32,138 bases of DNA from Octopus bimaculoides (GCF_001194135.2 NC_068990.1:51489070-51521207); one strand, 5' to 3'. Shown: positions 4,321 through 31,320, counted from the stretch's first letter. Made by a program: numbers and translations. The notes: generated from the letters alone by a model not told the origin.

Positions 4321-4865
4321 ATAGGCACCGCTGTTTTGCTACATTGTTATTATTGAAACCCTCCTCTCATGTGTGGCATTTGGTGAATAAGGGAGTGTGA
4401 TATTGCTACCCTCATTTGCACCTCTTGCTGTGAGGTAGGTTCATTTGGGACTCTCGACAGGAAGAGGTCCAGTTTTGATTTGAAGACATCTATATCCAGC
4501 TTGTGTAAGTCCCTCAGGCTCTTTGGGAGAATACTAAAAAGCTCTGGGCCCCTGAAACCCAGGCTGTGGCAGTAACTGGTCCTGAAGCGTGATGGCATTG
4601 CTGGGATCTTTGGCACTGTGAGGTGTCGACCCGTTCTGGCATTGGTGTAGCTTTCAATGCCAAACTTTGACACAGATCCTTCCAGGATCTTCCAGATATA
4701 TATTACTGCGTACCTCTCCCTCCATCGCTCCAGGGAGTAGTCTTAGCTCTTTCAACCTTTTCCAGTGGCTGAGATGTTGCAACGAGACGATCTTCTTTGT
4801 GAAGCTTCGCTGGACTGCTCCAAGATCTACTGTTAATTTTACACTGTTGAGTAACCACAGCTGGT
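4321..4865 (-). mobile_element. CR1-type LINE 3' fragment (5'-truncated, frameshifted)
   Basis: Minus-strand peptides QLW...LGAVQRSFTKKIVSLQHLSHWKRLKEL and RGPELFSILPKSLRDLHKLDIDVFKSKLDLFLSRVPNEP. Nucleotide match to 26850-26914 (GCTACCCTCATTTGCACCTCTTGC.GTGAGGTAGGTTCAT.TGGGACTCTC). Confidence 0.9.
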
Positions 4866-5439
4866 CAATTGATTGACTAATTAATTGATTTATTTCATCA
4901 TTAATGGAGAAACTCACAAGTATAGGGTTATCTGAGACTTTTATTCATTTAGATAACCTGCTCGCTTACAAGCAACGTGCTTTAAGGAAGAATCTTTCTT
5001 TTCATGGTTTGGGGTTTGATTGCCCTATTCCTCATGTAAGGAGTCTACATAGTGGCCTTCTCTCCGTGCATAATTTTTTATACACTATTATATATAAATT
5101 AGAAAATTACTATTTTTAAATCTCAATGAGAGATATTCAGCAACAGTACTTCGTAGTAAACATTGTTTGCCAACATAACATAGCAGTCCAGGTTTAGGAC
5201 GAATGTTCCTTTAATTTAGCTGCAGGAGACATCGTCTCCAGCTGGCTATACGACACGATCTGTATCCTTCTATTTTATTTAAAAAAAAATTTTTTTTTGT
5301 CGAATAAGGGAATCTAGCACCCCCACTCAGCTCAAAGCAATACATGTGTAACGCGATTCTGGTTTATTTCCTTCATCAGCACAGAATAATTCTTCGGCTA
5401 GAGGTGAATTTTTTATTAAGATAATTAATATCGTACATA

Positions 5440-8400
5440 GAGGTGACAAAACAGGAATTGTCCACCAAAATCATGTTAAAAACTCCTCCAAGATCATGTT
5501 AAGACAATTCAATTAAAGACATTACTCAAGAAGTATTAGCAGGTATACTGGCTATCAGCCCGGTAGCCACACCAATCCAGAGCCCGGTGGCAACGCCGGT
5601 GAAAGCCCAGCATCTACGGAGAGTGTTGGGGAAGCAGGCAGACAAAAACTGCCATGCCCCCCTCACAACCGTGAGTAAATTTGTTTTCTTTCTTCGATGA
5701 TTAAGTTGGGTTGTTTAAATGTGCGTGGAATGGGGTCGAGATGGAAACAGGCTTGTTTCCTGAACGACCTCACGACACATAGAATAGATGTGGCTATTGT
5801 AACCGAGTCCAAGATGAATAGACCTCAATCGTTCTCGCCTCTTCTGAGTGGTTACGAGAAATTTATTTCTCCTAGCCGAGGAGGAGGTGCAGGCGTGGCA
5901 GTCCTTATCAGGAAGAACTTGGTCTTACGGGTAAGTACTGTCTTTCTGGACTCAGAAGGTAGGCTGGTCGTACTGGATGTGTCTCGTGTGTTTAAGCAGT
6001 CCCTCAGTTTGGTAGCTGTCTATACTCCTAAGGAGTTTAGGCAGTCGGGTTTTTACCGAGACCTTCAGCACTTTCTAGTGACGTCTAAAACGTTAGTTTT
6101 GGTAGGGGACTTCAACACTATACTCAATGCACGGGTCGATAGTGTAGGCTCAACCGATAGGAAAGGGAATCCTTGCCTCAAGAGCCTACTAGAGAGCTAT
6201 AATCTAGTAGACCGTTACCGGCTGGATGAGCCGAGCGTTCCATAGTGGACGTGGAGTAACAACGACGGCTCACACAGATCATACCTAGATAAGATATTTA
6301 TTAAGGAAAGAGATAAGAATAGTGTTAGCTGTCCATAGTTTTCTATTGTGCCTTACACAGATCACAAACTTGTGACGTGTGAGGTACATGTAGATAAATG
6401 TAATAGACAGGGACCCGGGTATCGGAAAATGAACAAGTCTATTTTGACTTGCGAAGCTTTCCGTACCCGGATTAAGGTGTTAGTTCAGAGGGCATTATGT
6501 GGCACCATCATTAACAATAGATGGTGACACGACCTCATAAGAGCCATCCGTTTGGAGTCCATTAGATTTAGCAGGCAACTAAGTTTAGATAGGACTAGAA
6601 TAGAGGGCGATTCAGTTAAGAACTTAGAGGAGGCAATGAAATCTGGTTCTGCATCTAGAGTGTTGGCAGCGAGAACGGTCTTGTACCATCACCTCAACGC
6701 CAAGCATGAAGGTTGCAGAGTCAGAGCTAAGCTACGTGCAGGGAAACGAGGAGGTATTAATTTTGCCGGATGGGCCCGTCGTGAGGAGAATCAGAGAGGT
6801 AAAAAGTCCTCTATAATGTCTTTAACGGACAAACAGGGACGCAAGATCTATGGACAGGAGGAGATACAGAAAGTCTTTCACCAGCATTTTGCTCGGTTGT
6901 TCGGAGAGAGTGGTCCGCTTGGGCGGGTGGAGACCTTAAAGGACTTCCCAGCTGGTGGGCTGTGACTCTCGGCACGTGAAGCTGAATGCTGTGAAGGACC
7001 GATCATGCCCGCGGAGATAAGAGAGGTGTTGGCCGAGTGTGCCGGGGAAAAGTTGCCGGGGCTAGATGGTCTGCCCTATGAGTTTTATCGTTGTATGCCG
7101 GACTTGTTCGGGGGAATACTGGCAGGTGTCTATGCAAACTGGCAACAGAATGGGAGGATACCAAGTTCTGTGAGCCCGGGAGTTGTGACGCTGGTCCAGA
7201 AAGACCCGAGAAAAGGAGATAGCATCTGTAATTATAGGCCCATAACTCTTTTTAATGTAGAGTTAAAGATTTTGGCCAAGGTGTTAGCTAAAAGGTTGAC
7301 GGCTGTCGTGGAGAAACTTGTCGGGAAGGCACAGACATGTGCAATCCCAGGCAGGTTGACCCAGGATAATCTTCACCTTCTCCGCTACACTTTAGATCGG
7401 GTTGGGAAATTTGCCGGCAAAGGAGAGACATTGGGCCATTTAGACCAAAGTAAAACGTTCGATAGGATAGACCATCGGTACCTGGGGCGGTCCTCGAAGC
7501 GGCTGGGCTGGGCCCTGGCTTTCGCGGGTGGATCACCGCTATGTACAGCGGTATCAAGTCCACAGTCCAGATAAACGGCTACCTAACGGAGCCGTTTTCG
7601 ATCAAGCGTTCAGTTCGTCAAGGGTGTCTCTTGTCTCTGCTGCTGTACGATTTGGCTCTTGAGCCATTGCTACGGAAGTTGGAGAAGTTAGGAAGCAACC
7701 CAAATGAAATCGGATGAAGTAAGCCTGTTTCTGCTTATGCGGATGACGTCATCCTCATCGTGTCCAACGAAGCATAGCTACCTCGTGTAGAAGATGCCCT
7801 CCGAAGATACGAAGCGGTGGCAAAGGTAAAAGTTAACAAGGACAAGTCCATCGGATTGCGCCTCGGCACCTGGAGGAACAAGCTGATATCATCCAGTGTC
7901 GTTGGATACTGGACAGATGGTCCTGTTAAGTTGCTTGGAGTTTGGTTTACTCGGACTCCTAGACGGAGAAGAATTGAAGCGAGGTAGTGGACAAGGTGGA
8001 AGCCAAAGTACGGAAGTGGTCCGGAAGGCCTCTGTCCTTAAAGGGCAGGTCGAAGGTGGTGCAGGCGTTTATAGCATCTGTAATCACCTACCGTCTGTCC
8101 GTTGTGCCTTGCCCCGATTCGTGGCTAAACATGTTGGAATGACTCCTCTTCCGCTTGTTGTGTAATGGAGAAAATCCACTTGTTAGGCGCTCCGTTTGCT
8201 GCCAGGAACCGTTAAAGGGTGGGCTGGGAATGCCCTGGCTAAAGATGCGCAGACATGCGTTGAAGCTGAGACATCTCTGGTGCCACCTGGAGGGTGATAA
8301 GGTGTGGAGTCCGCTGGCGGAGGAATTCTTGTCGCGACCGGCCTCTTTGGAGAGATTTAAACCCGGTTTCATTAAAAGATGGAATCTGACTTTATGGCAG

Positions 8401-9365
8401 AAGGAGTGCCGACAGGCACTCTGGCTGATCCACAAGATAGGCAAGGTCGGCAGAGGGAATACCCCCTTGGTGTTCTATAGAGGACTGGTAGAGACAAACA
8501 ACGATGTCGTCATAGGAGGTGCTCTGTAGTTCGATGAGAACCAGCTTACCAGCCTGTTCAAAACATACTTTCAGGCCGGGGTACTTCCAAAAATTCCTGA
8601 TCTGGCAGTGTTACAGGAATGCATTACCTGTTTGCGATAAGTTATCCAGGCACGGATTGTCAGTGCCACCGACGTGTCCAAGATATGGGCTGGACGATGA
8701 AACCGTTCAGCACGCTTTTGTACAGTGTCGGGAGCTTGTGAGCTTGATAAGTTACGTTGAACACGTATTGTCGCACAAGGGACGAGTACAGCTGTCGGCT
8801 GCATCTATAATAAAGAGGATACCGTCAACTGGACTCTGAAAGGAAGGTTAGGCTTGCTTTTATTGTACGGTTTCAGTACTGAAAGAGTGTGTTTGGAGGA
8901 CTAGAATGGAAAGTTTTGTGTCAGGGTCTTTCGTCTCTGGCCCCGGTTTGCTCATCTTACTTCAGATACCATCTGAAGAGCAAGATGAGGTTGGAGAGGA
9001 AGACCCTGCCACCGAACGAATACGTGAAACGATGGAAGGATGTGATGAGAAAGGTGGGTGTCAGTAACCCAGCTTAATCATCGATGAAAGGAAAAACTGG
9101 TTGCTGGGCATTATAGGCTGCCGGGTTCAATTTTTTTAACCTTCTGTTCTTTTCCATTTTTGTTATTTTTGTGTTGTTTGATTTCTGGTTTTAAAAAAGA
9201 TGTTCTCATGTAAAGGCAAAAGTAAGCAAAAATATTTCTGTTAAATTATATCATATTTAATTTTTTTTAAATGTCTCATTCGAACTCTCATAACATTTCT
9301 GTATATTGTTTGTCCTGCATTGTTTCAATATATGTTTTGATCTCAATGATCATAATAAAGATTTT
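5440..9365 (+). mobile_element. L1/Tx1-clade LINE copy 1 (5'-truncated in ORF1; ORF2 with stops and frameshifts; 3' UTR ending in AATAAA at 9354)
   Basis: End of ORF1 with SPVAT-type repeats (5555-5615), then APE, RT and C-terminal Cys motif, then 3' UTR homologous to 15330-15529. Confidence 0.92.
5697..9077 (+). pseudogene. Tx1/L1 ORF2 (APE endonuclease + reverse transcriptase + Cys-rich C-terminus), disrupted
   Basis: APE motifs LNVRG, TESK, GDFN, YLDKI, TDHK. RT motifs PGLDGLPYEFY, NYRPITLFN, DQSKTFDRIDH, SVRQG, AYADDV. C-terminal CPRxG..ETVQHAFVQC. Multiple in-frame stops and frameshifts. Confidence 0.92.
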
Positions 9366-9382
9366 ACCTCTAGCCTAACAAT
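9366..9382 (+). other. Junction motif ACCTCTAGCCTAACAAT (putative target site/TSD)
   Basis: Near-identical motifs at 15530-15546 and 18471-18487, and inverted at 5389-5405, each directly after an element 3' end or AATAAA-like sequence. Confidence 0.7.
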
Positions 9383-10876
9383 TTTTTGTTCTTTTTTGAA
9401 GAACTCTAGCCGAATTTTTTGTGCGAAACCACCATTGTTGGGTGGTAGTGAATAACTGAGAAAAATTAGAAGCTATGCATACGCTACTGGAGATTGAGTT
9501 CCCCTAGACCCACGTGTGCTGGAACGAGATGTTACAGTGGAATGGAGAGCTGATAAAGAAATAAAGTAGTATGGTAGAGAAGGAGGGGTCAAATAAAAAA
9601 TGACCTGCCAGAGGAGGTAAAAGTGAAAATGGAAAATAATACGGTCATATTCAGAAGATTTTCGAATATAAATAGAACTGAACATGCGCTGCAGGAAAAA
9701 ATAGAAGAAATTTTGGAAGAGCAAATAGGTGAGAGCATAACATTGTTTATGAGAGGAAAGAAATATGCGTCTATAGTGGTAACTTTTATATCAAAAGAGG
9801 AGGCGGAAAACCCCAACAGGCTGATACAGGGAGAAAAACGGACTTTGATGCCAAACTGTTTGGAGAAAAGAATTGTCAGAATTGGGGTGGGAAGAATCCC
9901 ACCGTCGATAGACCCAGAGTGGATAATAGCCGCAATTTTTTATTCGGAGATAAGGAAGGAAAGCGAAGACATGAAGATGGGCATGGTGAGTTAAACCCAA
10001 CAAGTGAAGTGTGGGGCTATGGATTAGAGATAATTTGTGCAGTGAGCCCGAAATATTACAACGAAATACCTGAAACTTTAGAGCTACCAAATGAAGAAAA
10101 GCTGGAGGTAATATTGGAGGGGAGACTCCCAAAGTGTTACCAATGTGGTAAAAGAGGGCACTTGAGAAAGAAATGCCCTAGAGCAGCAGTGTAAATTGTA
10201 GAGGAGAGTATTCAGGAGAATATAATGGTGGAGAAACAGCAGAAACAGATAACAGAACAAGACGGGAATTTTGGGGAGGTGAAAGCAAGGAAAAGGGAGA
10301 GTAGGAAGTCACCAACGATAGTGGAATTGAAGAAGTAGAAAGCAATGGAAGAGGTAACCCAACATACGACGAGAAACGGGGAAGATTTACCAGTAGGATC
10401 ACCAGTAAAGGACTTGCAAGTACATAAACAGTAAGACCCACAGACACACAAACGCACAAAAGTATAGACGGACAGAAACAAGATAACTCAGAATTACGGA
10501 AACCTAAAAACATAGACACACAGACGAAACATACAGAATTAGTCAAACGAACACACAAACACACGGACACACAGACACAATCACAGGAAAGCCAAGTATT
10601 ACAGAAAAACAGAGACAAAAACACAAACACGCAAGACAAACAGAAGCAAGGTTTTTAATGAAATAGGACACCCAAAAGTTAAAAGAATTTCAAAATTGAA
10701 AGACATTATGAGAGGTGGATGTTGAACCTGGCACCTCGGTGGTGAATTATGTGGACGAAAAGGAGAAGAGTGAGTGGTAAGTCGTGATTTATTTTAAAGA
10801 CTGTGAAAGACTGAGAAAAACATTTGGTTAAACTATTTGTTTAAGAAAACAGGAAAATTAGTACATCCTGTTACTG
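9383..10876 (+). mobile_element. ORF1-only (half-LINE-like) element A: RRM-like + CCHC zinc knuckle, no ORF2
   Basis: Frameshifted ORF1 9623-10194 with RGKKYASIVVTF, GRIPPSIDPEWIIAAI and EGRLPK-CYQCGKRGHLRKKC (knuckle 10135-10176). A low-complexity Q/T/K tail ends EPGTSVVNYVDEKEKSEW* (stop 10778-10780). Confidence 0.8.
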
Positions 10877-11484
10877 ATTTTTTATTACCCACAAGGGGTT
10901 AAAAATAGATGGGACAATACACACATACGGGGACAATCAACACATGAAAGAATGGAATAGTGAAATTATACAATAGAGATGGGACGGCCACCCCAGCCCC
11001 GCTGCAGGGTAATTACGTTATTTCAATTATTTCAACAGTCTTCAACTGTTCTTTTCAAAATTATTTTAACAGTCTTTCAAAGTTCTTTTCAAAATAAAAA
11101 TCTACTTACCATTTTATATAGTTCTTAATTTCCTCATAGTTCACCACTGGAGCGCTGGGTTCCAAATTCACCTCGGGCCTCAGTGGGTTTATATCTGATA
11201 GGAAAGCCTCTTTTAACTTTCTATACTTTCTATACTCATCTCCTTATCGTAACCCTCTGAGAGGTCCACATTAACAATGTGTTTCATTTTAGTTATTTTC
11301 CTTTCTATTTTTGGTGCCGAATATATGTTATCAAATATATTCTGTTCTTGTGTACCTCTTACGTCTGTATATCTGTTCTTTTTTGTTTTTGTGATTCTGT
11401 ACTATCATACATCTGTTCTTTGTGACTGCATGTCTGGGTGTTTATTTGTCTGCGGTCTGCCTGTTTGTGTGACTGTAAGTCTGC

Positions 11485-12089
11485 GGATCTTTTTTAAAAC
11501 GGAGGCCACATTTTTCATTAACGAAACACTTTGAAACTTGGAACACTAGTAGAATGTGTCATATAAAACATATTTTTCTCTTAGTCTTCTTTAAAAAAAA
11601 AGAAATCCCTAAGTTATTCCATATTAAAGTTGTATTTCTGTAATTTCACCCAATCACTGACGTCCATTCAGCCGATATACATTAAGTGCCGACTACATAA
11701 ACAAACGATTCTGAAACAATTCTATCGGTGATAGGGTTAGGGTTAGGGTTAGGGTTAGGGTAAAACAGCAAATTTAAAAAGAAAAAAGCAAATAAAACGA
11801 AGAAAAAAAGAAAATGAAAAAAGCAAATTTAAAATGAAAAAAGCAAATAAAACGAAGCCATGACTTAATCAGCCAAAGGACTAAATGTAAACAACTGAAT
11901 ACTTGTCAGTGATTGGTTGAAATTATCGAAATAAGACAATTTTTTACATGAAATAAATTCGAATACAAAAATATTTTTTCTATTCTATAACACAAAATAG
12001 ATAAGTATACGAAGTTTGAAAGTCTTTCGGTACCAAAAACACTACGTAAAACATTAATGAAAAATGTGGCCCCGTTTTAAAAAAGATCC
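11485..12089. mobile_element. MITE / non-autonomous DNA transposon, Mutator-like (9-bp TSD), with internal (TTAGGG)n
   Basis: TIRs GGATCTTTTTTAAAACGGAGGCCACATTTTTCATTAA / TTAATGAAAAATGTGGCCCCGTTTTAAAAAAGATCC. Perfect TSD TAAGTCTGC at 11476-11484 and 12090-12098. Inner inverted repeat AATTTCACCCAATCACTGAC / GTCAGTGATTGGTTGAAATT. Confidence 0.9.
11732..11760 (+). repeat. Telomere-type repeat TAGGG(TTAGGG)4
   Basis: Direct reading. Lies near the centre of the MITE. Confidence 0.95.
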
Positions 12090-12282
12090 TAAGTCTGCAT
12101 GTGGCGTCTGTGTGTCTGTGCTTTTAGGTTCTGTGCATTTAGGTTTTTGCAACTCTGTGCTATCTTCTACACTTCCGTGTGTATGTATGTGTACTTATGC
12201 GCCTGTGAATCTGTTTGTGCGATTGTGAGTCTGCATGTTTATTTGGTGATGTTCTGCTTTTTATCCTCCGTAGTGTATAAGA

Positions 12283-15200
12283 TTTACAACCTGAAGGAAA
12301 AGCGAATAATGGAAGCCAAGAATGAAGTGGTGGAGAGGTGCCTGGCACCAATATGGAATCGGGTATACTACGCTAGCAGTTGAACACGAAGCGCAACAAT
12401 CGAAGCACAGTTCCCAACGGCTAACGTAGCCAAGGAGGTGTCAACAACGACACTAAAAAAAGAAGAGGTAATGTTGCTAGCCACATACTTGGGACGCAGA
12501 TCTCCAAAAACTACGGTCGAAGAAATCCCAGCCGGATATGAAGTTATGTGTGTAGCAGCGGCAGTAATTTACGATGTAGATGAGGAGGTGTCCATCTTAG
12601 AGATGAAAAAGAAAGACGCAGTAAACTGGAAAAGCCAGACACTAGAAATGGTAGTTCAATTTGCGAATGAAACCCTAGAAAATTTACCTAATTGGGTATT
12701 TGTAGGAGAGGGGCTATCAATGCTAGTGGCCATGGAGGGACGTTGGTCCCGATGCTTCATGTGTGGAGAGAAGGGCCTCGTTCGCTCCAAGCGCACCAAA
12801 AATAAAAAAAGAGAATGAGGCCCCACCCCCAAAAGCTACAAAAGAGTTGAAAGAAAAAACAGACAAACCGGAAAAGGCTTCAGAGAAGAAGGAAGAAAAT
12901 GTCGCTGAGAAGTAAGACAAATGAAGAAATGGATTTTACCACAGTCACACACAAACGAAAAAAGACACATGTCCCTGCCTCCCCTCTCCAATCAAAAATA
13001 TCAACAAACCATGCAACAGACACACACAACCAAACGCTCCAACCCAACTCCACGGTAACATCATTTATCCCCCCACCAAAAAAAATATGCGAAATAGCAG
13101 TGGCCTTTAGAAAGAAAAATGAAGTGTTGTCTAAAATAATTGGATCACACCATAAGGCACGTGTGTACAAAATATTGAAAGACATCGATAGGCATTAGAT
13201 TTGCAATAATGGACGAAAGCCTCTTGACAGACGTGAAAGCGCGTTACCCGGGCTATCTAAGAGATGTCAGCACTGAAGTGGCGGTGGTAAAATTAATTGC
13301 AAGCCCGGTAGCCACGCCAAGGAAAAGCCCAGCGGCTACACAAATGAAAAGCCCAGCGGCTACACCAGTAAAAGAAAAGGATGGGGAGGCATCCGAATTT
13401 GTGCAACCCCTCCCCAAACTTAAATTGTAATTCTTTTCTATAAATTTTCATCATGTCGATTAAGTTAGGGTGCGTAAATGTGCGTGGGCTGGGGTCGAAA
13501 TAGAAACAAGCTTGTTTCCTGGATGACCTCAGGTCACGAGATACAGATGTGGCCATTGTAACTGAGTCCAAGATGAGTGAACCACAAGCGTTCTTGCCTC
13601 TTCTAAATGGCTATGAGAAATTTATTTCTCCTAGCCGACGAGGAGAAGGGGCGTGGTGGTCCTACTCAGGAAGACCTTTGACTTACAGGTCAGTATAGTC
13701 TTTCTGGACCCTGAAGGTAGGCTGTTCGTCCTAGATGTGACCCACGAGAGTAAACAATCCTTCAGGTTGGTAGCTCTCTATGCTCCTAAGGAGTGTAGGC
13801 AGTCTGGTTTTTATCGAAACCTAGAGCACTTTCTAGTGATATCAAAAACTGTAGTTCTGTTAGGAGACTTTAACACTATTCTCGATGCACGGGTGGATAG
13901 TGTTGGCTCGACTAATAGGCGGGGAAATCCTGGCCTCAAGTGTCTACTTGACAGCTATAATCTAGTAGACCGTTACAGACCGGATCAGCCAAGCGTTCCA
14001 CAATGTACGTGGGGTAATAACGACGGCTCATGCAGATCTTATATAGATAGGATATTCATTAGAGATAGAGATAAGGATACTTTTAGTTGTCCACAATTTT
14101 GTATTTTCCTTTAAAAGGATCACAAATTCGTGACGTGTGAGGTACATATAGATAAATGTCATTGACAAGGGCCCGGGTACTGGAAGATGAACAAATCTAT
14201 TTTGACTTGTGAAGCCTTCCGTACCCGGATTAAGGATTTAGGACAGAGGGCATTATGTGGCACCATCATTAATTATAGATGGTGGCACGCCCTCAAGAAA
14301 GTCATTCGTTTAGAGTCTATTAGATTAATCAATCAGCTAAGTTTAGATAGATCTAGAATAGAAAGGGAACTAATTAAGAATTTAGACGAGGCAAAGGAAT
14401 CTGGCTCTGCGGCTGGGGTCCTGGTGGCGAGAACGGTCTTGTACCGTCACCTCACCTCAAAGCTAAGCACGAAGGCTGCAGAGTTAGAACTAAGCTACGT
14501 GCAGTGGACCGAGAAGGTATTAACGTTGCCGGATGGGCCCGTCGTGTGGAGCGTCAGAGTGGCAAAAAAGCCTCTATAAAGTCTTTAACTGAAGAAAAGG
14601 GGCGCAAGATTTATGGACAAGGAAAGATACAAAAGGCTTTTCACCAACATTTTGCCTGGTTGTTTGGGCAGAACGACGCACTCGAGCGTGGAGAGCCCCT
14701 AAAGGACTTCCTTGCCAGTGGGCCACGTGAGGCGGAATGCTGTGAAGGACCAATTTAACCTGCGAAGTCAAAGAGGTGTTGGCCGAGTGCGCCGGAGACA
14801 AGCTGCCGGGGCTGGATGGTCTACTCTATGAGTTTTATCGTAGCAAGTCGGACTTTTTCGGGGACCTACTGGCAGTTTTATAGGAACGCTTTACCTGTTC
14901 ACAAGAAGTTACCCAGGCACGGAATGTCAGTGCCACCGACATGTCCAGGATGTGGACTGGACGAAGAAAACGTTCTGCACGCTCTTGTACACTGTCGGAA
15001 GCTGTTAAGCTTGATAATTTACGTTGAACACGTGTTGTCGCATCTGGGTACAGTACAGCTATCGGCTGAATCTATAATAAAGATTGTGCCACCAAAAGGA
15101 CTCTCAAAAGAAGGTGAGGCATGTTTTCTCTGTACAGTTGCAGTAATGAAAGAGTGTGTATGGAGGACTTGAATGCAAGGACTCGTGACGGGATCCTTCG

Positions 15201-15529
15201 TCTCTGGCCAGGGGCAGCTACTATACTTCAGATACCATCTGAAGAGCAAGATAGGGCTGGAGAGGAGGATTCTGTCGCGGAGCGTGTTTGAAAAAAGATG
15301 ATAAGAAAGGTGGGTGTAAGTAACCCTACTTAATCGTCATAGGAAAAAGGAAAGGGCTAGCCGCTGGGCCTTCCAGGCAACCGGGTATAGTCGCTCCTCT
15401 GAAAAAAGTTAAATTAAATTATGTTTCATCAATACTTTAAATCTATAAGCGACATTCGAGCTCATCATAATATTATTTGTGTGTATTGTCCAAAATTTAT
15501 ATGATACTCATTATTGTAAAAAATATTTC
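12283..15529 (+). mobile_element. L1/Tx1-clade LINE copy 2: ORF1 + APE, RT core deleted
   Basis: ORF1 12283-13430 (degenerate knuckle CFMCGEKGLVRSK, SPAAT repeats). APE from about 13455 is co-linear with copy 1. After LPYEFY the sequence jumps to WQFYRNALPV...CPGCGLDEENVLHALVHC. Confidence 0.9.
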
Positions 15530-15546
15530 ACCTCTATCCGAACAAT
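15530..15546 (+). other. Junction motif ACCTCTATCCGAACAAT
   Basis: Follows the copy-2 3' UTR and precedes element C. Confidence 0.7.
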
Positions 15547-16672
15547 GGCTACGAGCGACGTGGAACCCTGAGTTGAATGAAGTTTGTATTTGAGTATACG
15601 TGTAAATCGCTTTGTTGATGCATGTGGAAGGTCTTTCATATCAACTGTTAATTAATTGAATTGTTGAATTGTTATTTTTGCTTAATTGTTTTCTTCCCCA
15701 TTTATGGGTGAAGTTGTAACAAAAATAAAAAGTGAAGACCCAACAAGTCGGCTGCTATGCTGCAGCAACCGGAAATGGTTTCACTGCGGATGTACTGAAG
15801 TGAGAGAAGTGAAATTTGAAGAGAAAAGATTGAAGGAGTTTAACGAGCTCATCATGAAGGAGCTTACCATCCTGAGGCTGACCCCGCCTCAAGAAGTGGC
15901 AGATAAGACGACGAAAAGGACAGTAGTCTATAGAACGTTGTCCACAGCAACTTAAAGGTAGAGATAGCTACGGTGGAAGCAGTGGAGGAATGCCTAAAGG
16001 ACATAAAGGACTTCATTATATACTCAAATACAAACTAGAGGAAAGAAGTACGGCACAGTGGAGGTTTGGTTCACGACCGAACAGGACGCCATAAAGTACT
16101 GCATTGTGTCGTTGAGGTCGTGAGAGTGGGCACTACTGCCAACCTACTGTGGCAAACGTGCGGCCAGAGTTAAGATTGGCAGAGTGCTCCCAGAGATCGA
16201 TGAGGCGTGGCTGGTGGCAGCCATCCTCTTCAATACGGAGGAAGAAACAAGAATTCTCAAGGTTACAAGAACAACAGAGGTAAACTGACGGGGATACGGC
16301 CTCGAGGTGTCGGTCCAAATCAGTTTACCAGATTTGCATAAAATCACAGAAGAGATTGCCCGAGGATGTAAAACTGAGAGTGGTAGTGGAGGGAAGACCT
16401 CCCATCTGCTACCACTGCGGAGTGCGGGGACACGTGAAAGCGAGGTGTCCCCAGAATCACGAAGAGGACGTAGAGCAAGAGAAGCAGGAAGAGGGAGAAG
16501 AACAAAGAGTTGAGGCACAAATGCAAGTAGGCGGAAAGAATACAGAAAATGTGGGAGAAAAGTATACAATAGGAAAAAGAAAGAAGTGAGAAGAAAACTT
16601 GAATTCGCCACCAAAAGTCCGTGGAAAAAGAGAAAGGAGAACATAGAGGAGAATCAGTGTGTAAAACCAACC

Positions 16673-17764
16673 GGATCATTTCCTTTTGGCCGGCACATAG
16701 AAAGCATAATTTTTTGTAACTATACACTTTCAAATTTCGTATACTGGTAGAATGTGTCATTTAAAACATCACTTACTCTTGCCGTTGTTTGTCAACAACA
16801 ACTATCGGTGGTATATATTTCGTTTGTCACTGTTATTTATGACATCGTGCGTTTGTACTGGTTTTAGCTCTGGGGTTTTAGGGTTAGGGTTAGGGTTCGG
16901 ATTTTAGAGTTAGGTTTATGGTTTTAGGGTCAGGGTTAGGGATAGGGTTTTAGAATTAGGGTTACGGTTAGGGTTTTAGGATTAGGTCAGGGTTTTTTCA
17001 GCTACTATTTTCGGAAATGCATTTTGCCCCTCCCCCTCCAATTTCTTCATTTTTCACATTTTTCCGTAACCCTAAAATCCCAACCCTAATCCTAATCGTA
17101 ACACCCTAACCCTAACCCTAACTTTAAAACCCTAACCCTAAAACCCTAACCCTCACCTAACCCTAAAGCCCTAACGCTAACCCAAACTCTAAAACCCTAT
17201 CCCTGACCCTAAAACTCTAACCCTAACCCTAAATCCCCAAAGCTGAAACCAGTACAAACGCACGAACGATGTCATAAATAACAGTGACAAACGAAATATA
17301 TACCACCGATAGTTGTTGTTGACAAACAACGGCAGTAGCTTTATCCAAGGGAAAAGATCCCAAAATAGGCAATTTAGAAAACGCTAAAACAAAACGTAAA
17401 TACTTCCACAAACAAAATAAACTGAAATAAATTAAAAAATAACTAATAAGTAAATTGATTAAACTATATACACGTGTATATCAAATGTAAATCTATTAGA
17501 AATAACAGTGACAAAGTAAATTTACACCGCCAGAACGTCTTGTTGACAAACCACAGCATTAATTGCTTTCACCTCAATAGATTGATTGGTTGAAATTACC
17601 GAAATACAACTTTAACACGAAATAACTTCGAAAATAAAGAATTTTCTTAAAATGCCAAGAGTAAATGATGTTTTAAATGACACATTCTACCAGTATACGA
17701 AATTTGAAAGTGTTTAGTTACAAAAAATTATGTTTTCTATGTGCCGGCCAAAATGGGAAGATCC
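16673..17764. mobile_element. Foldback-type MITE with long TIRs and head-to-head telomere-like arrays
   Basis: Termini GGATCATTTCCTTTTGGCCGGCACATAGAAA / TTTCTATGTGCCGGCCAAAATGGGAAGATCC. The outer ~110 bp are near-perfect inverted repeats, and a second inverted block pairs about 16785-16870 with 17235-17335. Flanks AACCAACC (16665-16672) and AACCAGCC (17765-17772). Confidence 0.88.
16872..17232. repeat. Degenerate (TTAGGG/TTTTAGGG)n facing (CCCTAA/CCCTAAAA)n
   Basis: G-rich array at about 16872-16992, a spacer, then a C-rich array at about 17067-17232. Confidence 0.92.
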
Positions 17765-18470
17765 AACCAGCCATACCAAAGGGAATTATTACGGAGGAGA
17801 AAATATGTGTGCAGAAAAGAAAGGAAGATAGAAGAGAGATACCAACAACAACGAGTGAGAGAGATACAGAGAAGGATGAAACACCGCGCCAGGAACGTCA
17901 GAGATTAATGATGGAAAGTGGGAAGAGATACCAAAAGGAAAACACAATAAGACTATGATAAACTATAAAAAAGTGTGAAAATCGAGAAAAGAATTACTAA
18001 GAGGAAACGTAATTAGAGTTAAGTTATCAGAGAGTGAGTGTAGCGAGGGCAGTTTTGCATGAGAAAGAGAGAGGGAGGAGAGATATTGAAGGAGTTATTT
18101 GGAGAGAAAAAAGAAATATCGAGGATACAGATTCGGTACGATGAGGTGCCACCAGTGGTGGCATTTATGGACTTCATAGAACACATAATGTAAATGAAAG
18201 TAAGTAAAATGTTTAAAATCTTAAATAGTGACTTTTGAAAAATGATGCAAAAAGTGAAAAATGAACTGTATGTTAAATGTTATAAATGAACAGTTAAATG
18301 ACACTGCCTGCGAGTGGGGAGCAGGTAAGACATTGCATATTTCATTTTATCATTTTATCATTATAATTCATTATTTCATTCATTATATGTTTTTGTACCC
18401 CACTGTGTTGTGCTGTCTGTCTATGTATCGTCCTCTCTTTGTAAAGCCTGTGTGCTCAAATAAAGAAACA

Positions 18471-18487
18471 ACCTCTAGCCAAACAAT
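18471..18487 (+). other. Junction motif ACCTCTAGCCAAACAAT
   Basis: Begins 6 nt after the AATAAA of element C. Confidence 0.7.
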
Positions 18488-19463
18488 TGTCTCGTGATGA
18501 CTCGGATTTTTTGCGTCGTAATTTGCATTTACCAAAGTTATGTGAGTCCATTCCGTGTGCTTTTGTCTGATATTGTGATATTTTTGTGTATTTTGCTTTG
18601 AACTGAACTGTTATCCCTGGAACAATAATTTTGGTATTCTTCCAAAAAGAATAAAATGATGTAAAGCAGTGCAATCTTCTCAGCAGGGAAAAAAGAGAAA
18701 CAAAACGCATCAATAAGACATTTTAACCGAATGTGATTGCTGCATATATGATGAAGGGAACACTGGTAAGTTATTTTTTTAGATAACCGTTAATCGAAAG
18801 AACGTCTTAGTAAAACAAACTTCTTTATTAACCGACAATAAAGACATTTAACAGCCCTCTAACTTTTGAATTCAAGAAATTGTTTAAATCTGAAAACAAT
18901 CCTCCACCTAACCCAAGATTGAAACAGTATGAAAACGATCTCTGGTCTATCGTGAGGAATGTGAAATTCCACCGTTCACCCTTAAGCAATAAACAGCTAT
19001 CTTCACAATATCATCAAATAAATTCATAACATGAATGGGATACTGGTTCAATAGGATAAAACAGGAAACTTATACAGACTTACCAAGGATTATTCCCTAG
19101 ATGTGCTTAGAAAAGAAATACAAAAGAACTATAGGATTACTGGTAAAAGTGCAATCAGGAACGCCAACCTTGAGGCTAAGAAAATTATGGAGATGAAGAC
19201 CGACCCCATGATCCCAAACAAGTTCGTTTATTTTAAAAAATCACAAACAAATGTTTTTTAATAACCCAACCTTACGAATTATTTGTCCTTCTAGCTCTGA
19301 CATCTGTGTACTTAGTAAAAATATTCTAGATAAATATATTCCTACTTTAGTTAAAAAATGAAAGCTTAATTTATGGTCTAATTCGTTCCAAGTGTTCGAC
19401 TGGTTCATTTCTATTAATAACAAGAAGTGCGCTAAGTTTGTCCAGTTTGACATTTTTAGTTAC

Positions 19464-19627
19464 TATTCCTCTATCAACCCAGTTGTACATAACAATGCAC
19501 TCTGGTTCGCACACAACAAAGCAGGTCTCACCAAGGATGAAATTACTATCCTCTATCAACCCAGTTGTACATAACAATGCACTCTGGTTCGCACACAACA
19601 AAGCAGGTCTCACCAAGGATGAAATTA
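19464..19627 (+). repeat. 82-bp tandem duplication inside the PLE RT
   Basis: CCTCTATCAACCCAGTTGTACATAACAATGCACTCTGG...CCAAGGATGAAATTA repeated with starts at 19468 and 19550. Confidence 0.95.
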
Positions 19628-21354
19628 ATGTCGTGTTAGCCGCCAGAAAATCTAATATTAAATTTGAGAACAAGCTGTGGGTCCGTTAAGATACGCTCAA
19701 CAGTTTTGATATCACGATGGGAAGTTCTGATTCAGCACAAATCGATGGTTTGGTCGGTATATATATCCTTTATGAGATGGGTGACCAATTCCAAAACATC
19801 AACGAAAGTCTATATCGTGATGGTTGTCTACTCTACCTTCAAAATGCTTCTAACCAAAAATTACAAAGGGCTAAATTTTTCCGAAACGTGGGCATTGTTT
19901 TCGATGATGATATAACTAAAGCAAACTTTTTGGATATTACCCTTAACTTACATAATGATTCATATTTCCCATACCATAAATCCTCAACTAATTTAAAATA
20001 TATTAGCTCTTTCAGTAACCATTCTGAGGCTATTACAAGGAATTAACTTAAGAATATTTCACTTAGACTTTCTAGATAATCTGCCTGTGTTGATATCTGC
20101 AATGATAAAACCGAATCTCATAAATCTGCCTTACCTAAAGCTGGCTATAAAGAAAAATTACCTATATTAACCCTATTGAGATTAAATTCACCTCTATTAA
20201 TCAAGACATGAAATCAAGTCATAACGGTAATAACAACAAAACTTTTAGTTCGAATAACAACACTCAATCGAGTAATGTAATTCTAGAGCGTAAGGGAGCT
20301 AACCGTTCTTTAAGACCCTTTTTTCTTTGTAAAAGTACATCTAGGACTTTTAAAGATAATTACCCTAACAATAACGTATGTCCTAGCAAAACTGTTTGGT
20401 TGATATTTCCATACGGTAAGCAGATCAAATCTAACCTCCCTTACTAATTTCGTGAGGCTATAGATAAGAATTTCCCACAAAATTCAAGATACCATTCCAT
20501 TATCAATTCACACCAAATCAGGATAGGGTTTTCAAACACCAAAAACCTTTCACAAATCATCTCTTCTCATAACAAAATTTGTTAAATACAAATCCACTTA
20601 ATGAAAATTATAACATTGATATTTTTGACACTAACCATTCGTTGATCAATAATAGCAACAATATTAGTATTTCTGATATAAATTCCAATCGCATTCGTTT
20701 TCTTAGCAGTAATTCTAAGACTAAAAACTATTCATCAATGTAAAATTGCTTCCGGTTCTTCATCTCAGTTGTCCAAAAGAATATCTAATCATTACTCTAC
20801 ATTTAGACATATCAATGAACGTAACAATAGTGGGATTAGTAAATTAATTTGGTCTCTAAAGGAACATAATAATTTGAATTGGAATGGACTATTCTATCTA
20901 GATCCTTTCCGTATGGTAAAAGTAAACCTTTTAGCTCGCTCTGTAACGATGAACTGTATTTCATCCTGTTCTGAGAGAATCCTCTTGTAAACACGTTTAA
21001 AGAATGCGTTTTTCGTTGCAAACATTGGCAAAAACATACCTTTAGTTCTTATAAGTGATTTCTAACAGACTATAAAATTCGACCTTTAACTATCTTCTTA
21101 CATTTCACTTCCACTAAATATAACTATTTCCACACCTTTAATCTGTATTCCTATTCACCTATTACACTATATTTCTCCACTTTAGTTTTCTGATAATTTC
21201 TTTCTTCTTCCTCCTTCTCTTTCTATAAATTGCTTTGACGTTATATCTAAAAACGTTTTTTTAAAAGAAATAACTTACTAGCGTTCCCTCCATCATAAAT
21301 GCAGTAATCACATTCGGTTAAAATGTCTTATTGATGCGTTTTGTTACTCTTTTT

Positions 21355-21440
21355 TTCCTTGATGAGAAGATTGCATTCATTTATATCATTTTATTCCTTC
21401 CTAAAAAATACCAATGTTTTCTTCGAAACATATGTCGGAA
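21355..21440 (+). ncRNA. Type I hammerhead ribozyme motif in the PLE terminal repeat (C3>U variant)
   Basis: Stem I TTCC/GGAA; core TTGATGA; stem II GAAGA/TCTTC with a long loop; GAAA; stem III AC-ATAT-GT; GUC cleavage triplet at 21434-21436. Confidence 0.7.
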
Positions 21441-21658: not shown

Positions 21659-21874
21659 NNNNNNNNNNNNNNNNNNNNNNNNNNNNNNNNNNNNNNNNNN
21701 NNNNNNNNNNNNNNNNNNNNNNNNNNNNNNNNNNNNNNNNNNNNNNNNNNNNNNNNNNNNNNNNNNNNNNNNNNNNNNNNNNNNNNNNNNNNNNNNNNNN
21801 NNNNNNNNNNNNNNNNNNNNNNNNNNNNNNNNNNNNNNNNNNNNNNNNNNNNNNNNNNNNNNNNNNNNNNNNNN
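21659..21874. other. Assembly gap flanked by TA/TG microsatellite
   Basis: N bases. Confidence 1.
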
Positions 21875-23315: not shown

Positions 23316-23531
23316 GGGTTTAAAAATCTTATCCCTATAACTAAAAGACAAAAAATCTCTCAAATGTCATCATTTCTAAAAATAAACTTGGCATCATTTC
23401 TAAAAATAGCCAAACACCTACTGGGGTTTAAAAATCTTATCCCTATAACCAAAACACAAAAAATCTCTCAAATGTCATCATTTCTAAAAATAAAGTTGGC
23501 ATCAATTCTAAAAATAGCCAAACACATACTG
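23316..23531 (+). repeat. Two-copy 108-bp tandem repeat with internal sub-repeat CATCA(T/A)TTCTAAAAATA
   Basis: GGGTTTAAAAATCTTATCCCTATAAC... starts at 23316 and 23424. Confidence 0.92.
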
Positions 23532-24003: not shown

Positions 24004-24211
24004 TGTTTGTCTGTCTGTGCTTCCCCCACAATTTGACAACCGATGTTGGTGTGTTTACATCCCCGTAGGTTAGCGGTTCAGCAAAAGAGACCGATAGAAT
24101 AAGTACTAGACTTACAAATAAAATAAACACTAGAGTAAGTACTAGACTGCAGGCAGTGTTTCAGCATGGCCGCACTCAAATGTCTGAAGCAAATAAAAGA
24201 ATAAAAGAATA
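24004..24211 (+). mobile_element. SINE 3' portion, same family as 1756-1947
   Basis: TTGACAACCGATGTTGGTGTGTTTACATCCCCGTA...GAGACCGATAGAATAAGTACT...CAGCATGGCCGCACTCAAATGTCTGAAGCAAATAAAAGAATAAAAG. Confidence 0.82.
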
Positions 24212-24415
24212 TACATATAAATGCTTATGTTATGTATATATGAATGAATGCAATTTATGTATATATGTAGGCATGTATGTATGTGTTGTTTTGCAATGTA
24301 AGCAAATAAAAGAATAAAAGAATATACATATAAATGCATATGTTATGTATATATGAATGAATGTAATTTATGTATATATGTAGGCATGTATGTATGCATT
24401 GTTTTGCAATGTAAG
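24187..24415 (+). repeat. Two-copy 113-bp tandem duplication starting in the SINE tail
   Basis: AAGCAAATAAAAGAATAAAAGAATATACATATAAATGC... starts at 24187 and 24300, with few mismatches. Confidence 0.92.
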
Positions 24416-26736: not shown

Positions 26737-28150
26737 TTGTTTGTTTGTTTATAGTTTCAGCTTAGAGCTGCGGCTATGCTGATGCACCGCCGTGTTGCTA
26801 CACTATTATTACGGGGGGCCTCCTACAATATGTGGCACTTGGTGAAGAATGGAGATTGATTTAGCAACCCTCATTTGCACCTCTTGCCGTGAGGTAGGTT
26901 CATCTGGGACTCTCNNNNNNNNNNNNNNNNNNNNNNNNNNNNNNNNNNNNNNNNNNNNNNNNNNNNNNNNNNNNNNNNNNNNNNNNNNNNNNNNNNNNNN
27001 NNNNNNNNNNNNNNNNNNNNNNNNNNNNNNNNNNNNNNNNNNNNNNNNNNNNNNNNNNNNNNNNNNNNNNNNNNNNNNNNNNNNNNNNNNNNNNNNNNNN
27101 NNNNNNNNNNNNNNNNNNNNNNNNNNNNNNNNNNNNNNNNNNNNNNNNNNNNNNNNNNNNNNNNNNNNNNNNNNNNNNNNNNNNNNNNNNNNNNNNNNNN
27201 NNNNNNNNNNNNNNNNNNNNNNNNNNNNNNNNNNNNNNNNNNNNNNNNNNNNNNNNNNNNNNNNNNNNNNNNNNNNNNNNNNNNNNNNNNNNNNNNNNNN
27301 NNNNNNNNNNNNNNNNNNNNNNNNNNNNNNNNNNNNNNNNNNNNNNNNNNNNNNNNNNNNNNNNNNNNNNNNNNNNNNNNNNNNNNNNNNNTGGTGGGTG
27401 ACCACAGTTGTGAGAAGTAATCCAGGCGGCTGAGGACGAATGTCCGCCAGAGGATCATCATGGTTTCTTTATCTCTGGTTCTGAATGTTCTCAGGATCCA
27501 TCCAGCCAGTCGCCTGCACTTTGTCGCCATCCTGGTAATGTGCACTTGGAAAGAGGTATCATCACTCATGTCGATACCCAGGTCTCTCACTGATTTAGGC
27601 TCTGGGATTGAAATTCCCTGCGGACCAGTGTACTCTGTAAGTTTCATATTTAGTTTTGGACGTTGGTAGCGCAGGGCTTGGAACTTTTCAGCATTAAACT
27701 TTATATTATTATCCTCAGCCCATCTGTAAACTGAGTCCAACTCCTGCTGCAGATGTGCAACATCACTGGAGTCCTGTATTTTCTGCGAGACTTTCGTATC
27801 GTCTGCATAGCTTGCAAGAGTGGCTATCCGGGCACTTGAGGGCATATCTGAGAGAGCGACTATAAAATGCAATGGTCCCAAGACAGTGCCCTGTAGAACA
27901 CCGCTCATTATCTGTGTTTTCATAGAGGTGGCTCCATTAGTCACTACTGCCTGACTTCTATCATTCAGAAAGTCATGTAACCACTCTCCAAGTTTTCCAG
28001 CTATGCCAAGATCACGCAGTTTGTGGCATATCACACCATGATCCACTTTGTCAAAAGCTTTTGCAAAATCAAGGTATATTACGTCCACATTTGAGTTGTT
28101 GAGTAACTGCCTCAATACCCAGTCATAATGTTGTAAGAGCTGGGTCAGCT
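26737..28150 (-). mobile_element. CR1-type LINE, 5'-truncated, with RT domain open reading frame; contains gap 26915-27391
   Basis: VDVIYLDFAKAFDKVDHG, SGVLQGTVLGP, SYADDTK, VRDLGI, LDYFSQLWSP. 3' end carries a hairpin and an (AAAC)n tail. Confidence 0.95.
26915..27391. other. Assembly gap (N run)
   Basis: N bases. Confidence 1.
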
Positions 28151-29419: not shown

Positions 29420-30227
29420 AAAACATTGTTTGATTATCTACAGGTGTAAACATATAGACTGTGAGTCGGTTACTATGCTGCATATGCGTCTTGCCATACT
29501 ATACGAAATGTTTCTTTTTATGTGGGATGGGTGGCAGGAGTAGAAATTTAAATAGTGGCGTATGTCATTTTTTTTTGTAGTAGATGTCTGTTGTGACGAT
29601 GAAGTTGTGTATCTTCATGTTGATGTCTAGGAAGGGATGTTCGTTGTAGTTGGTATCTATTGTGAAGTGGATAGATGGGTGCAGTGTGTTGAAGATGTTG
29701 CGGAATGTTCGTAGATCTTCTGATCTGTTCCAAAAGATGAAACAGTCATCGAGGTAGCGTTTCCACTTTTTCTTGATGTCTTCTCTGAAGTTGCATTCGA
29801 AGACGTTCCTTATTTCAACGTATAGTTTGTTCTCAAGGAAACCCATCACTAAGTTGGCATATGAAGGTGCGAATTTCATACCCATAGCCGTACCCTTTAT
29901 CTGTCGGTATAACTTGTTATTAAATGAGAATGTGTTCTCTTCAAGTATTAATTGGGTGGCTTTGGTGATAACGTCTGTTTTGAAACGTTTATCTATGAGT
30001 TCCCTGTATTTTCCTACCCAATATTTTATCGCTTCCGGACCCAGGGTGTGTGGTATGTTCGTGTATAAGTTTGTGGCATCGAAGCTTGCAAGTATGGTGT
30101 TTTCCGGAATCGTATTTGGAATGTGTGTGAGCATAAAGGTGTGTGGGCATAAAGGTTTGAGGAGTACATCTATGAAGTGGCTTAGCTGTTGCGTTGGTGA
30201 TTCGCGCCCTGCAACTATGGGTCTCAT
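29420..30227 (-). mobile_element. Penelope-like element RT fragment
   Basis: ORF 29565-30227: RPIVAG..SPT..LSHFID, ASFDATNLYTNIPH, QIKGTAMG..FAPSYANL, KRYLDDCF, PFLDI. After a frameshift in an A-run it continues YLNFYSCHPSHIKRNISYSMARRICSIV. Confidence 0.93.
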
Positions 30228-31104: not shown

Positions 31105-31320
31105 TAGGGTGTTAGGGCTAGAGTTTTAGGGTTACGGTTAAAGTTAGGATTTAGGGTTACGGTTACGGTTAGGGTTAGGATTAGGGTTAGTGTTACGATT
31201 TTAGGGTCAGGGTTAGGGTTTTAGGGTTAGGGTTAGAGTTTAGGGTTATGGTTTAGGATTAGTGTTAGGGTTAGTGTTAGGGTTAGGATTAGGTTTTGGG
31301 TTTTAGGATTAGGGTTGGGT
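31105..31320 (+). repeat. Interstitial degenerate telomere-like array (TTAGGG, TTACGG, TTAGGA, TTAGTG, TTTTAGGG)
   Basis: About 35 hexamer-like units, one orientation only. Confidence 0.9.

Follow-up and report, generated by a model that had tools for sequence, protein, structure and literature searches.

A 17-base motif at the 3' ends and tandem joints of decayed L1/Tx1-type LINEs and ORF1-only elements in Octopus bimaculoides, a candidate insertion target

Several families of long interspersed elements (LINEs) are already known to land at specific sites. Here, a 32,138-nucleotide stretch of Octopus bimaculoides DNA (GCF_001194135.2 NC_068990.1:51489070-51521207), called the window throughout, is set beside these systems, as it holds a cluster of old, dead LINEs of the L1/Tx1 type, accompanied by members that encode only the first open reading frame (ORF1), in which a 17-base motif recurs. 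Tx1L of Xenopus laevis has a long target-site duplication (TSD) and no poly(A). The system is comparable to that proposed for the window, being a site-specific LINE of the L1/Tx1 group with an apurinic/apyrimidinic endonuclease (APE), found at one sequence in Tx1D, and its target lies inside a DNA transposon (Garrett et al. 1989; Christensen et al. 2000, as cited in PMC1950540 and PMC4494074). According to the same citing papers, the specificity of the Tx1L endonuclease was shown in vitro, whereas that in the window is inferred from sequence.

The crocodilian pair Tx1-Mar and SINEU-3 (Kojima 2015, PMC4494074) likewise combines an APE-type LINE of the L1/Tx1 group with non-autonomous partners at one insertion site, has a TSD of fixed sequence (16 bp, compared with 17 in the window) and inserts in tandem with a single TSD enclosed between units. 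The crocodilian target is part of an identified repeat, Mariner-N4_AMi, and stands on both sides of solo copies, whereas no host repeat was identified around the motif of the window. In addition, SINEU elements are poly(A)-tailed and encode no protein (PMC4494074), whereas the tails in the window lack poly(A) and the partners encode ORF1. The half-L1 known as HAL1 (Bao and Jurka 2010, as cited in PMC4494074) keeps ORF1 and the LINE 3' end and lacks ORF2, as does one element of the window, C, and probably a second, B. As described in that citing paper, HAL1 is mammalian and poly(A)-tailed, has a type II ORF1 and is not site-specific; the partners in the window differ from it in having a CCHC-type ORF1 that is only 26-34% identical to that of the neighbouring LINE. 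Finally, R1 and R2, with their read-through priming, and Utopia in U2 genes share with the window an exact 3' junction, a 5' junction that varies or is deleted, tandem insertion on occasion and, on the reading proposed below, downstream target sequence in the transcripts (PMC4640811). These elements target rRNA or snRNA genes, and Utopia and R2 use a restriction-like endonuclease (PMC4640811), whereas the window presents no RNA gene at the motif.

The 17-base motif was found four times in the whole window at up to 3 mismatches, where 0.05 matches are expected, and 0 of 100 shuffles reached four. The initial annotation had reported three copies, at 9366, 15530 and 18471, and these are present and far above chance; the total is four, with the additional copy lying in inverted orientation. 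The copies, which differ from one another at 1-2 of the 17 bases, are as follows.

Motif copy m1: 9366-9382, plus strand, ACCTCTAGCCTAACAAT; sits between LINE copy 1 and element B.
Motif copy m2: 15530-15546, plus strand, ACCTCTATCCGAACAAT; sits between LINE copy 2 and element C.
Motif copy m3: 18471-18487, plus strand, ACCTCTAGCCAAACAAT; follows element C, and the sequence beyond is not recognisable as a family member.
Motif copy m4: 5389-5405, minus strand, ACCTCTAGCCGAAGAAT; 2 mismatches to the query, not noticed in the initial annotation.

Each copy follows an A-rich, AATAAA-type end, as had been claimed, and the spacing is fixed. Here, AATAAA plus exactly 6 bases stands ahead of the motif in all four full copies, with AAAAAA (at 15518) taking its place for the copy at 15530, and the four spacers read GATTTT, TATTTC, GAAACA and AAATTC. 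The 3' junction is therefore precise, being AATAAA-N6-ACCTCTAGCCNAACAAT in four of four tails, which come from four different elements; for m4, AATAAAAAATTC is directly upstream on the minus strand. The tail-plus-motif pattern of the family can be written as AAWAAA-N6-ACCTCTANCCNAANAAT with no more than 2 mismatches. A partial copy had also been proposed at 9403-9414. It exists, but extends over 9402-9418, where 13 of 17 bases match, and this degenerate copy is located within the 5' untranslated region (UTR) of B, 20 bases inside its 5' end.

The arrangement is tandem, with one motif sandwiched between copy 1 and B (m1), one between copy 2 and C (m2), and m3 after C. The members of the cluster, along with a miniature inverted-repeat transposable element (MITE) nested among them, are listed in order.

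Z: 5406 to approximately 5470, minus strand; inverted 3' tail fragment of a family LINE, inner end approximate (about 5450-5510).
LINE copy 1: 5512-9365, plus strand; 5'-truncated, with an ORF1 C-terminal remnant at about 5512-5690, ORF2 at 5697-9067 and a 3' UTR with a small hairpin and AATAAAGATTTT.
B: 9383-11276, plus strand; ORF1-bearing, with a 5' UTR at 9383-9622 and ORF1 at 9623-10194 with a CCHC knuckle; 3' end approximate (about 11100-11276), no motif after it.
MITE: 11485-12089, unstranded; splits the stretch that separates B from copy 2, and has terminal inverted repeats, a TSD of 9 bp (TAAGTCTGC) and (TTAGGG)4 at its centre.
LINE copy 2: 12260-15529, plus strand; 5' limit approximate, ORF1 part at 12438-13430, ORF2 from about 13453, tail ending in GTAAAAAATATTTC.
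C: 15547-18470, plus strand; ORF1-only element of about 1.83 kb without the nested MITE at 16673-17764, tail ending in AATAAAGAAACA.

In the initial annotation, positions 9383-15529 had been taken as a single LINE copy 2. This interval contains two separate ORF1 modules (9623-10194 and 12438-12818) and must therefore hold at least two elements, B and copy 2. Over 13458-14875 and 14869-15386, copy 2 is approximately 80% identical to copy 1, and it is without the 1.48 kb equivalent to copy 1 positions 7125-8602. The homology between them begins at about 5512-5557 of copy 1, whose ORF1 tail matches copy 2. The tail of Z aligns with those of both LINE copies, and Z and copy 1 meet head to head, at the truncated 5' end of the latter.

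The LINEs can be assigned to the L1/Tx1 group of APE-type non-long-terminal-repeat retrotransposons by their predicted domain content, which is an AP-endonuclease, then a reverse transcriptase, then a C-terminal zinc motif. The copy 1 matches in Pfam are Exo_endo_phos (E = 6e-9), RVT_1 (E = 1e-9) and zf-RVT (E = 1.8e-9, at 8519-8839), and its conceptual ORF2 aligns with human L1 ORF2p (E = 6e-53; aligned residues 6-864, covering endonuclease and reverse transcriptase). A zf-CCHC knuckle is present in the ORF1 of B and C (E = 7e-5) and in that of the relatives described below, is degenerate in copy 2, and no RRM model matched. The APE-type designation made earlier is thus borne out, with a CCHC-type ORF1 in addition. 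A type I ORF1, consisting of an RRM and a CCHC knuckle, has been described as consistent with Tx1 in animals (PMC5203782). A Xenopus protein, P0022, matched at 28% identity and could not be identified as Tx1L. The ORF2 of copy 1 carries 12 stops and 3 frame changes, and the 1-2 differences in 17 bases among the motif copies fit the decay of about 6% that is estimated from these 12 stops.

The ORF1 of C spans about 15686-16589, with its CCHC-knuckle module at about 16037-16470, and no ORF2 match was found between the defined ends of the element. With ORF1 and a LINE-type 3' end present and ORF2 absent, C is an ORF1-only element (half-LINE, HAL1-like), as had been suggested, and its 3' tail is held in common with the LINEs. 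B is probably an element of the same kind. The ORF1s of B and C are 33-49% identical, and either compared with copy 2 ORF1 gives about 26-34% (tblastn). In B, ORF1 starts about 240 bases past the motif and in C about 140 bases past it, so that both look full-length at their 5' ends; the earlier statement that the first two motifs precede the 5' ends of the next members is correct for these two ORF1-bearing elements. As the joined units are different elements (copies 1 and 2 at about 80%, the ORF1s of B, C and copy 2 diverged), the array was not built by duplication and repeated insertion is indicated instead. Tandem duplication as the origin of the array was ruled out on these grounds.

The closest relatives of the ORF2 are 37-42% identical in amino-acid sequence (best matches among 5.8 billion proteins) and lie at loci L001 and L077-L082, all from one eukaryote-containing ENA assembly, sample ERZ21867824. 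Their family is young and apparently intact, with an array period of 6.43 kb and units about 98-99% alike within one array. They are like the window in having a CCHC ORF1, no poly(A), one TSD per joint plus one after the last unit, and a 3' end with a hairpin, here of 7 bp with compensatory changes, followed by (A/G)AATAAA. In L077, L079 and L081, each head-to-tail joint consists of AATAAA, then GCAGAC(T/C)AGAAGGT, then the next unit, and L081 also has this 14-mer ahead of its first unit, which is 5'-truncated, while L079 and L082 have it behind their last. Flank homology between loci runs over about 92 bases (92%) on the left of L081 and L082, and over about 240-270 bases (81%) on the right of L079 and L082. 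Because the flanks are homologous and the TSD precedes truncated units, what follows AATAAA in the relatives is target DNA, and it is proven that the element itself ends at AATAAA. The 14-mers are TSDs at one site of a repeat of about 350 bp.

A sister subfamily (L001 and L080) occupies a similar but distinct site, AGCAGCTGTAGTAAG, at two loci, with a 15-bp duplication and flanks conserved for about 100 bp. Divergence is greater in these flanks, with 4 mismatches over 64 bases counted by eye, than in the elements, which are about 98% alike. The L001 subfamily bears a fossil of the other target, GCAGACTAGAAGGT, at its 5' start, and because the second subfamily carries this fossil of the first target, a switch between the two similar targets, GCAGACTAGAAGGT and AGCAGCTGTAGTAAG, is suggested by the sequences. 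The degenerate motif at the 5' end of B parallels this fossil TSD. Taken together, this branch of L1/Tx1-type LINEs is site-specific, with duplications of 14-15 bp, no poly(A) and sandwich arrays, in agreement with what has been published on Tx1-Mar and SINEU-3 (PMC4494074). It differs from the window in its target sequences (GCAGACTAGAAGGT and AGCAGCTGTAGTAAG), in having no 6-base spacer after AATAAA, in its young intact copies, and in target flanks that stay alike from locus to locus, unlike those in the window. A CTAG core lies 4-5 bases from the left edge in both the window motif and the first target, GCAGACTAGAAGGT; the second target has CTGTAG there and one locus has CCAG, and this likeness is a weak hint.

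By analogy, the window repeats the architecture of its relatives with a 17-mer, which favours a site-specific reading, while the window itself falls short of proof. The length of the motif matches the clade, where TSDs are 14 and 15 bp in the relatives and 16 bp in Tx1-Mar/SINEU-3 (PMC4494074). With a probability of roughly one half, the 17-mer was the target and the duplication of an old, now dead site-specific Tx1-like lineage and its ORF1-only users, whose transcripts also carried the motif by read-through. This reading starts from the motif, its fixed spacing, the types of element, the two sandwiched joints and the site-specificity of the relatives. From these we infer specificity of the endonuclease for the 17-mer, read-through and pairing-primed reverse transcription, which would operate as follows. 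The element-encoded AP-type endonuclease would nick at the 17-mer, and a staggered second nick would duplicate about 17 bp. As the elements end in AATAAA plus 6 bases without poly(A), the transcripts would have to run about 23 bases past AAUAAA, and would hence terminate in a copy of the site. Pairing of this copy with the nicked site would give the exact 3' junction of all four cases. Re-insertion into either copy of the duplicated site would then produce a head-to-tail array of unlike members with one motif per joint. When priming took place at a non-cognate break, the read-through copy of the motif would simply be copied in, and this would explain both the outer copies with unrelated flanks and the inverted tail-plus-motif beside copy 1.

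A number of results weigh against the motif being a target. Within the window, it adjoins 3' ends in four of four cases and is never alone at a 5' junction. Before B and C it doubles as the 3' copy of the neighbour. The remaining 5' junctions, those of truncated copy 1, Z and copy 2, do not coincide with the 3' end of a neighbour, and all three lack the motif. By the refuting condition set in the initial annotation, a motif found only beside 3' ends may be the elements' own terminus. No plus-strand motif precedes the truncated copy 1, nor is there one where Z gives way to copy 1; site-specific LINEs are known to undergo 5' deletions (PMC4640811). Relative to the inverted tail Z, m4 has the orientation and spacing that the other copies have to their tails, as expected if it were part of the RNA. 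Between 9419 and 15529 no motif was found, even at 5 mismatches or with gaps, which leaves the boundary of B and copy 2 without one, and the earlier claim of a motif at every head-to-tail junction was too strong. Neither at this boundary nor where Z meets copy 1 did a degenerate or gapped motif score above shuffles.

The flanks add to these points. No empty site was seen in the window. The only testable pair of independent insertions, m3 and m4, lacks flank homology, as their downstream flanks are unrelated (p = 0.22 over 25 bases) and the roughly 330 bases beyond gave no local alignment above shuffles. This mismatch counts against a target because a 17-mer target should sit in a repeat, as in the relatives. 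The sequences after m3 and m4 contain no ORF1-like coding and nothing recognisable as a family member; a hidden member there was considered and rejected, the match being 35% over 51 residues without the cysteines. Searches beyond the window were also unsupportive. A scan of viral contigs for the motif returned 64 single chance matches, and a JGI metagenome scan with AAWAAA-N6-motif returned 10, which by their sequence are apparently chance and not LINE ends. An exact look-up of one ORF of the window found nothing, and no protein match exceeded 42% identity among the 5.8 billion searched. In the literature, the motif string matched only unrelated papers, apparently as primer sequences.

The sequence surrounding the motif bears on a second explanation, in which the 17-mer is only the 3' terminus of the elements. 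Here, a tail module composed of a small hairpin, AATAAA, 6 bases and the 17-mer would be recognised by the reverse transcriptase, as in stringent LINE/partner pairs, and insertion would be unspecific. The array would result from reverse transcriptase reaching the 5' end of one RNA and jumping to the 3' tail of another, with Z primed off the other DNA strand in a twin-priming geometry. The initial annotation had described the flanks on both sides as otherwise unrelated. This is true downstream, where likeness over the 25 bases that follow the four copies does not exceed that of random pairs (anchored test, p = 0.05-0.9), but not upstream, where the 12-60 bases preceding the motif are significantly similar in copy 1, copy 2 and Z (p <= 0.002) and less clearly so in C. 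The AATAAA-N6-motif end of C recurs in copy 2 and Z, as does its GT.T.GTC box, which stands some 55 bases upstream. A 3'-terminal sequence is thus common to the LINE and its non-autonomous partner, which is a stringent-type feature.

Conservation that spans the upstream tail and ends exactly at the 3' end of the motif speaks for this terminus explanation, as do the fixed spacing at all four 3' ends and the unrelated outer flanks. Further support comes from a 4-bp hairpin 2 bases ahead of AATAAA, with one compensatory change as read from the alignment (GATC/GATC in copy 1, GATA/TATC in Z and GATA/TATT in copy 2), and the covarying 7-bp hairpin of the relatives is at the same place. RNAalifold, on the other hand, gave no consensus structure; the motif is predicted to be unpaired, and single folds are indistinguishable from those of shuffles. 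The outward-facing inverted tail and motif at the truncated 5' end of copy 1 fit priming from both strands. End-to-end jumping also predicts what is seen along the array, with a full-looking member on the right of each joint and a truncated one at the far left. L1-type enzymes are documented to switch templates, according to work cited in PMC4494074. Against this, a single event would require a cDNA of about 11 kb with several jumps, the boundary of B and copy 2 lacks the motif that jumping would have left there, and no ordinary TSD surrounds the whole block, as 5374-5388 and 18488-18502 differ. In the nearest relatives, moreover, the element ends at AATAAA with target DNA beyond, as proven by flank homology and by the TSD ahead of truncated units. 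An unspecific insertion with the motif as terminus is the main competing account, though a less likely one. The claim that the motif is a target or TSD is left standing in part, with two sandwiched joints and target-specific relatives on its side, and with a motif restricted to 3' ends and unrelated outer flanks on the other.

A related idea is that the 17-mer served as a terminal redundancy, or portable landing pad, which allowed mixed head-to-tail arrays to form at sites without a pre-existing target. In such a case, every family RNA would acquire the 17 bases at its 3' end through read-through, and other RNAs would start with the motif because the duplicated site had been incorporated 5'. 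Autonomous and ORF1-only RNAs could then concatenate via the 17-mer, by pairing-guided template switching or by self-targeting. We regard this as unlikely.

The motif might instead mark where each element begins at its 5' end, perhaps as an initiator or as the start of an internal promoter, and lie behind 3' ends only through head-to-tail joining. Both m1 and m2 are directly ahead of a 5' UTR and ORF1, a second motif-like stretch is found near the 5' end of B, and m1 plus its downstream bases is marginally like the 5' start of the relatives (p = 0.004-0.04). This likeness is confined to m1 and comes from a T run (m2-m4, p = 0.06-0.97), and homology of the motif to the relatives' 5' start was rejected for this reason. 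In addition, no recognisable element follows m3 or m4, the LINE copies are not 3'-truncated, and an exact spacing to the upstream AATAAA in all four copies is unexpected for a 5' terminus. Such an origin is quite improbable.

It was also considered that the motif is a piece of a targeted multicopy small RNA gene, by analogy with Keno in U2 small nuclear RNA (snRNA). The idea arose from CCTCTATCCGA..ACAAT, which we take to be like U2 stem-loop IIa, from what is presumably an 11-base identity of m2 with human U2 71-81, and from an A(U)nG-like stretch 16 bases after m3 that we took to bear on U2; it was then ruled out. Rfam searches of the motif copies and their surroundings, including short stretches and with E <= 10 allowed, matched neither U2 nor any other structured RNA, and the motif cannot form the IIa stem. 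The 3' flank of Keno corresponds to U2 from position 39, and no such U2 match (E <= 10) is present around any copy of the motif; the published Keno/Utopia site, U2 position 38/39, is in another region of U2 (PMC4640811). With these Rfam negatives and the Keno site lying elsewhere, it is extremely improbable that a small RNA gene, whether for U2 snRNA or another, was targeted.

Should the 17-mer be a true target, the window would add one more sequence-specific lineage of the Tx1 type, whose less common feature is the presence of ORF1-encoding partners that share the site. An AP-type endonuclease would also gain a defined recognition sequence of 17 bp, of use in comparing how such enzymes change targets. 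The relatives show an apparent switch of this kind between two similar targets. If the motif were only a terminus, the locus would exemplify tail-sharing and array building without target specificity. On either reading, mechanisms of this kind have been described before, and the copies in the window are dead elements.

Several other features accompany the cluster. The nested MITE at 11485-12089 is not part of the LINE/motif system. It is one of two copies of a foldback MITE, the other being that at 16673-17764 in C, in which the terminal inverted repeats begin with GGATC, the target duplications are 8-9 bp (TAAGTCTGC and AACCA[A/G]CC) and the interior has telomere-like TTAGGG/CCCTAA arrays. 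A third, degenerate TTAGGG-like array at 31114-31320 is similar to the MITE core (repeat families D7/D8). The interval between B and copy 2 also contains weak inverted duplications (10712-10825/11058-11174 and 10501-10578/11438-12130, 70-74%) and a 34-bp tandem repeat at 11025-11095, which may reflect additional elements, nested or rearranged.

To the right of the array, 145 bases past m3, begins a 2.8-kb segment (18631-21414) bounded by inverted repeats of about 175 bp that match at 84%; no clear target duplication was found around it, and it may be a DNA transposon. A run of N at 21659-21874, flanked by (TA)n, marks an assembly gap, and the array context right of m3 may be incomplete. Other, unrelated LINE fragments with reverse transcriptase are located at 4325-4920, 26784-28115 and 29565-30227, all on the minus strand and none with the 17-mer. 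The 3' ends of two of these, 4325-4455 and 26784-26914, are about 82% identical. Finally, near-perfect two-copy tandem duplications are present at 19460-19627, 23316-23531 and 24187-24415, with units of 82, 108 and 113 bp and 95-98% identity.

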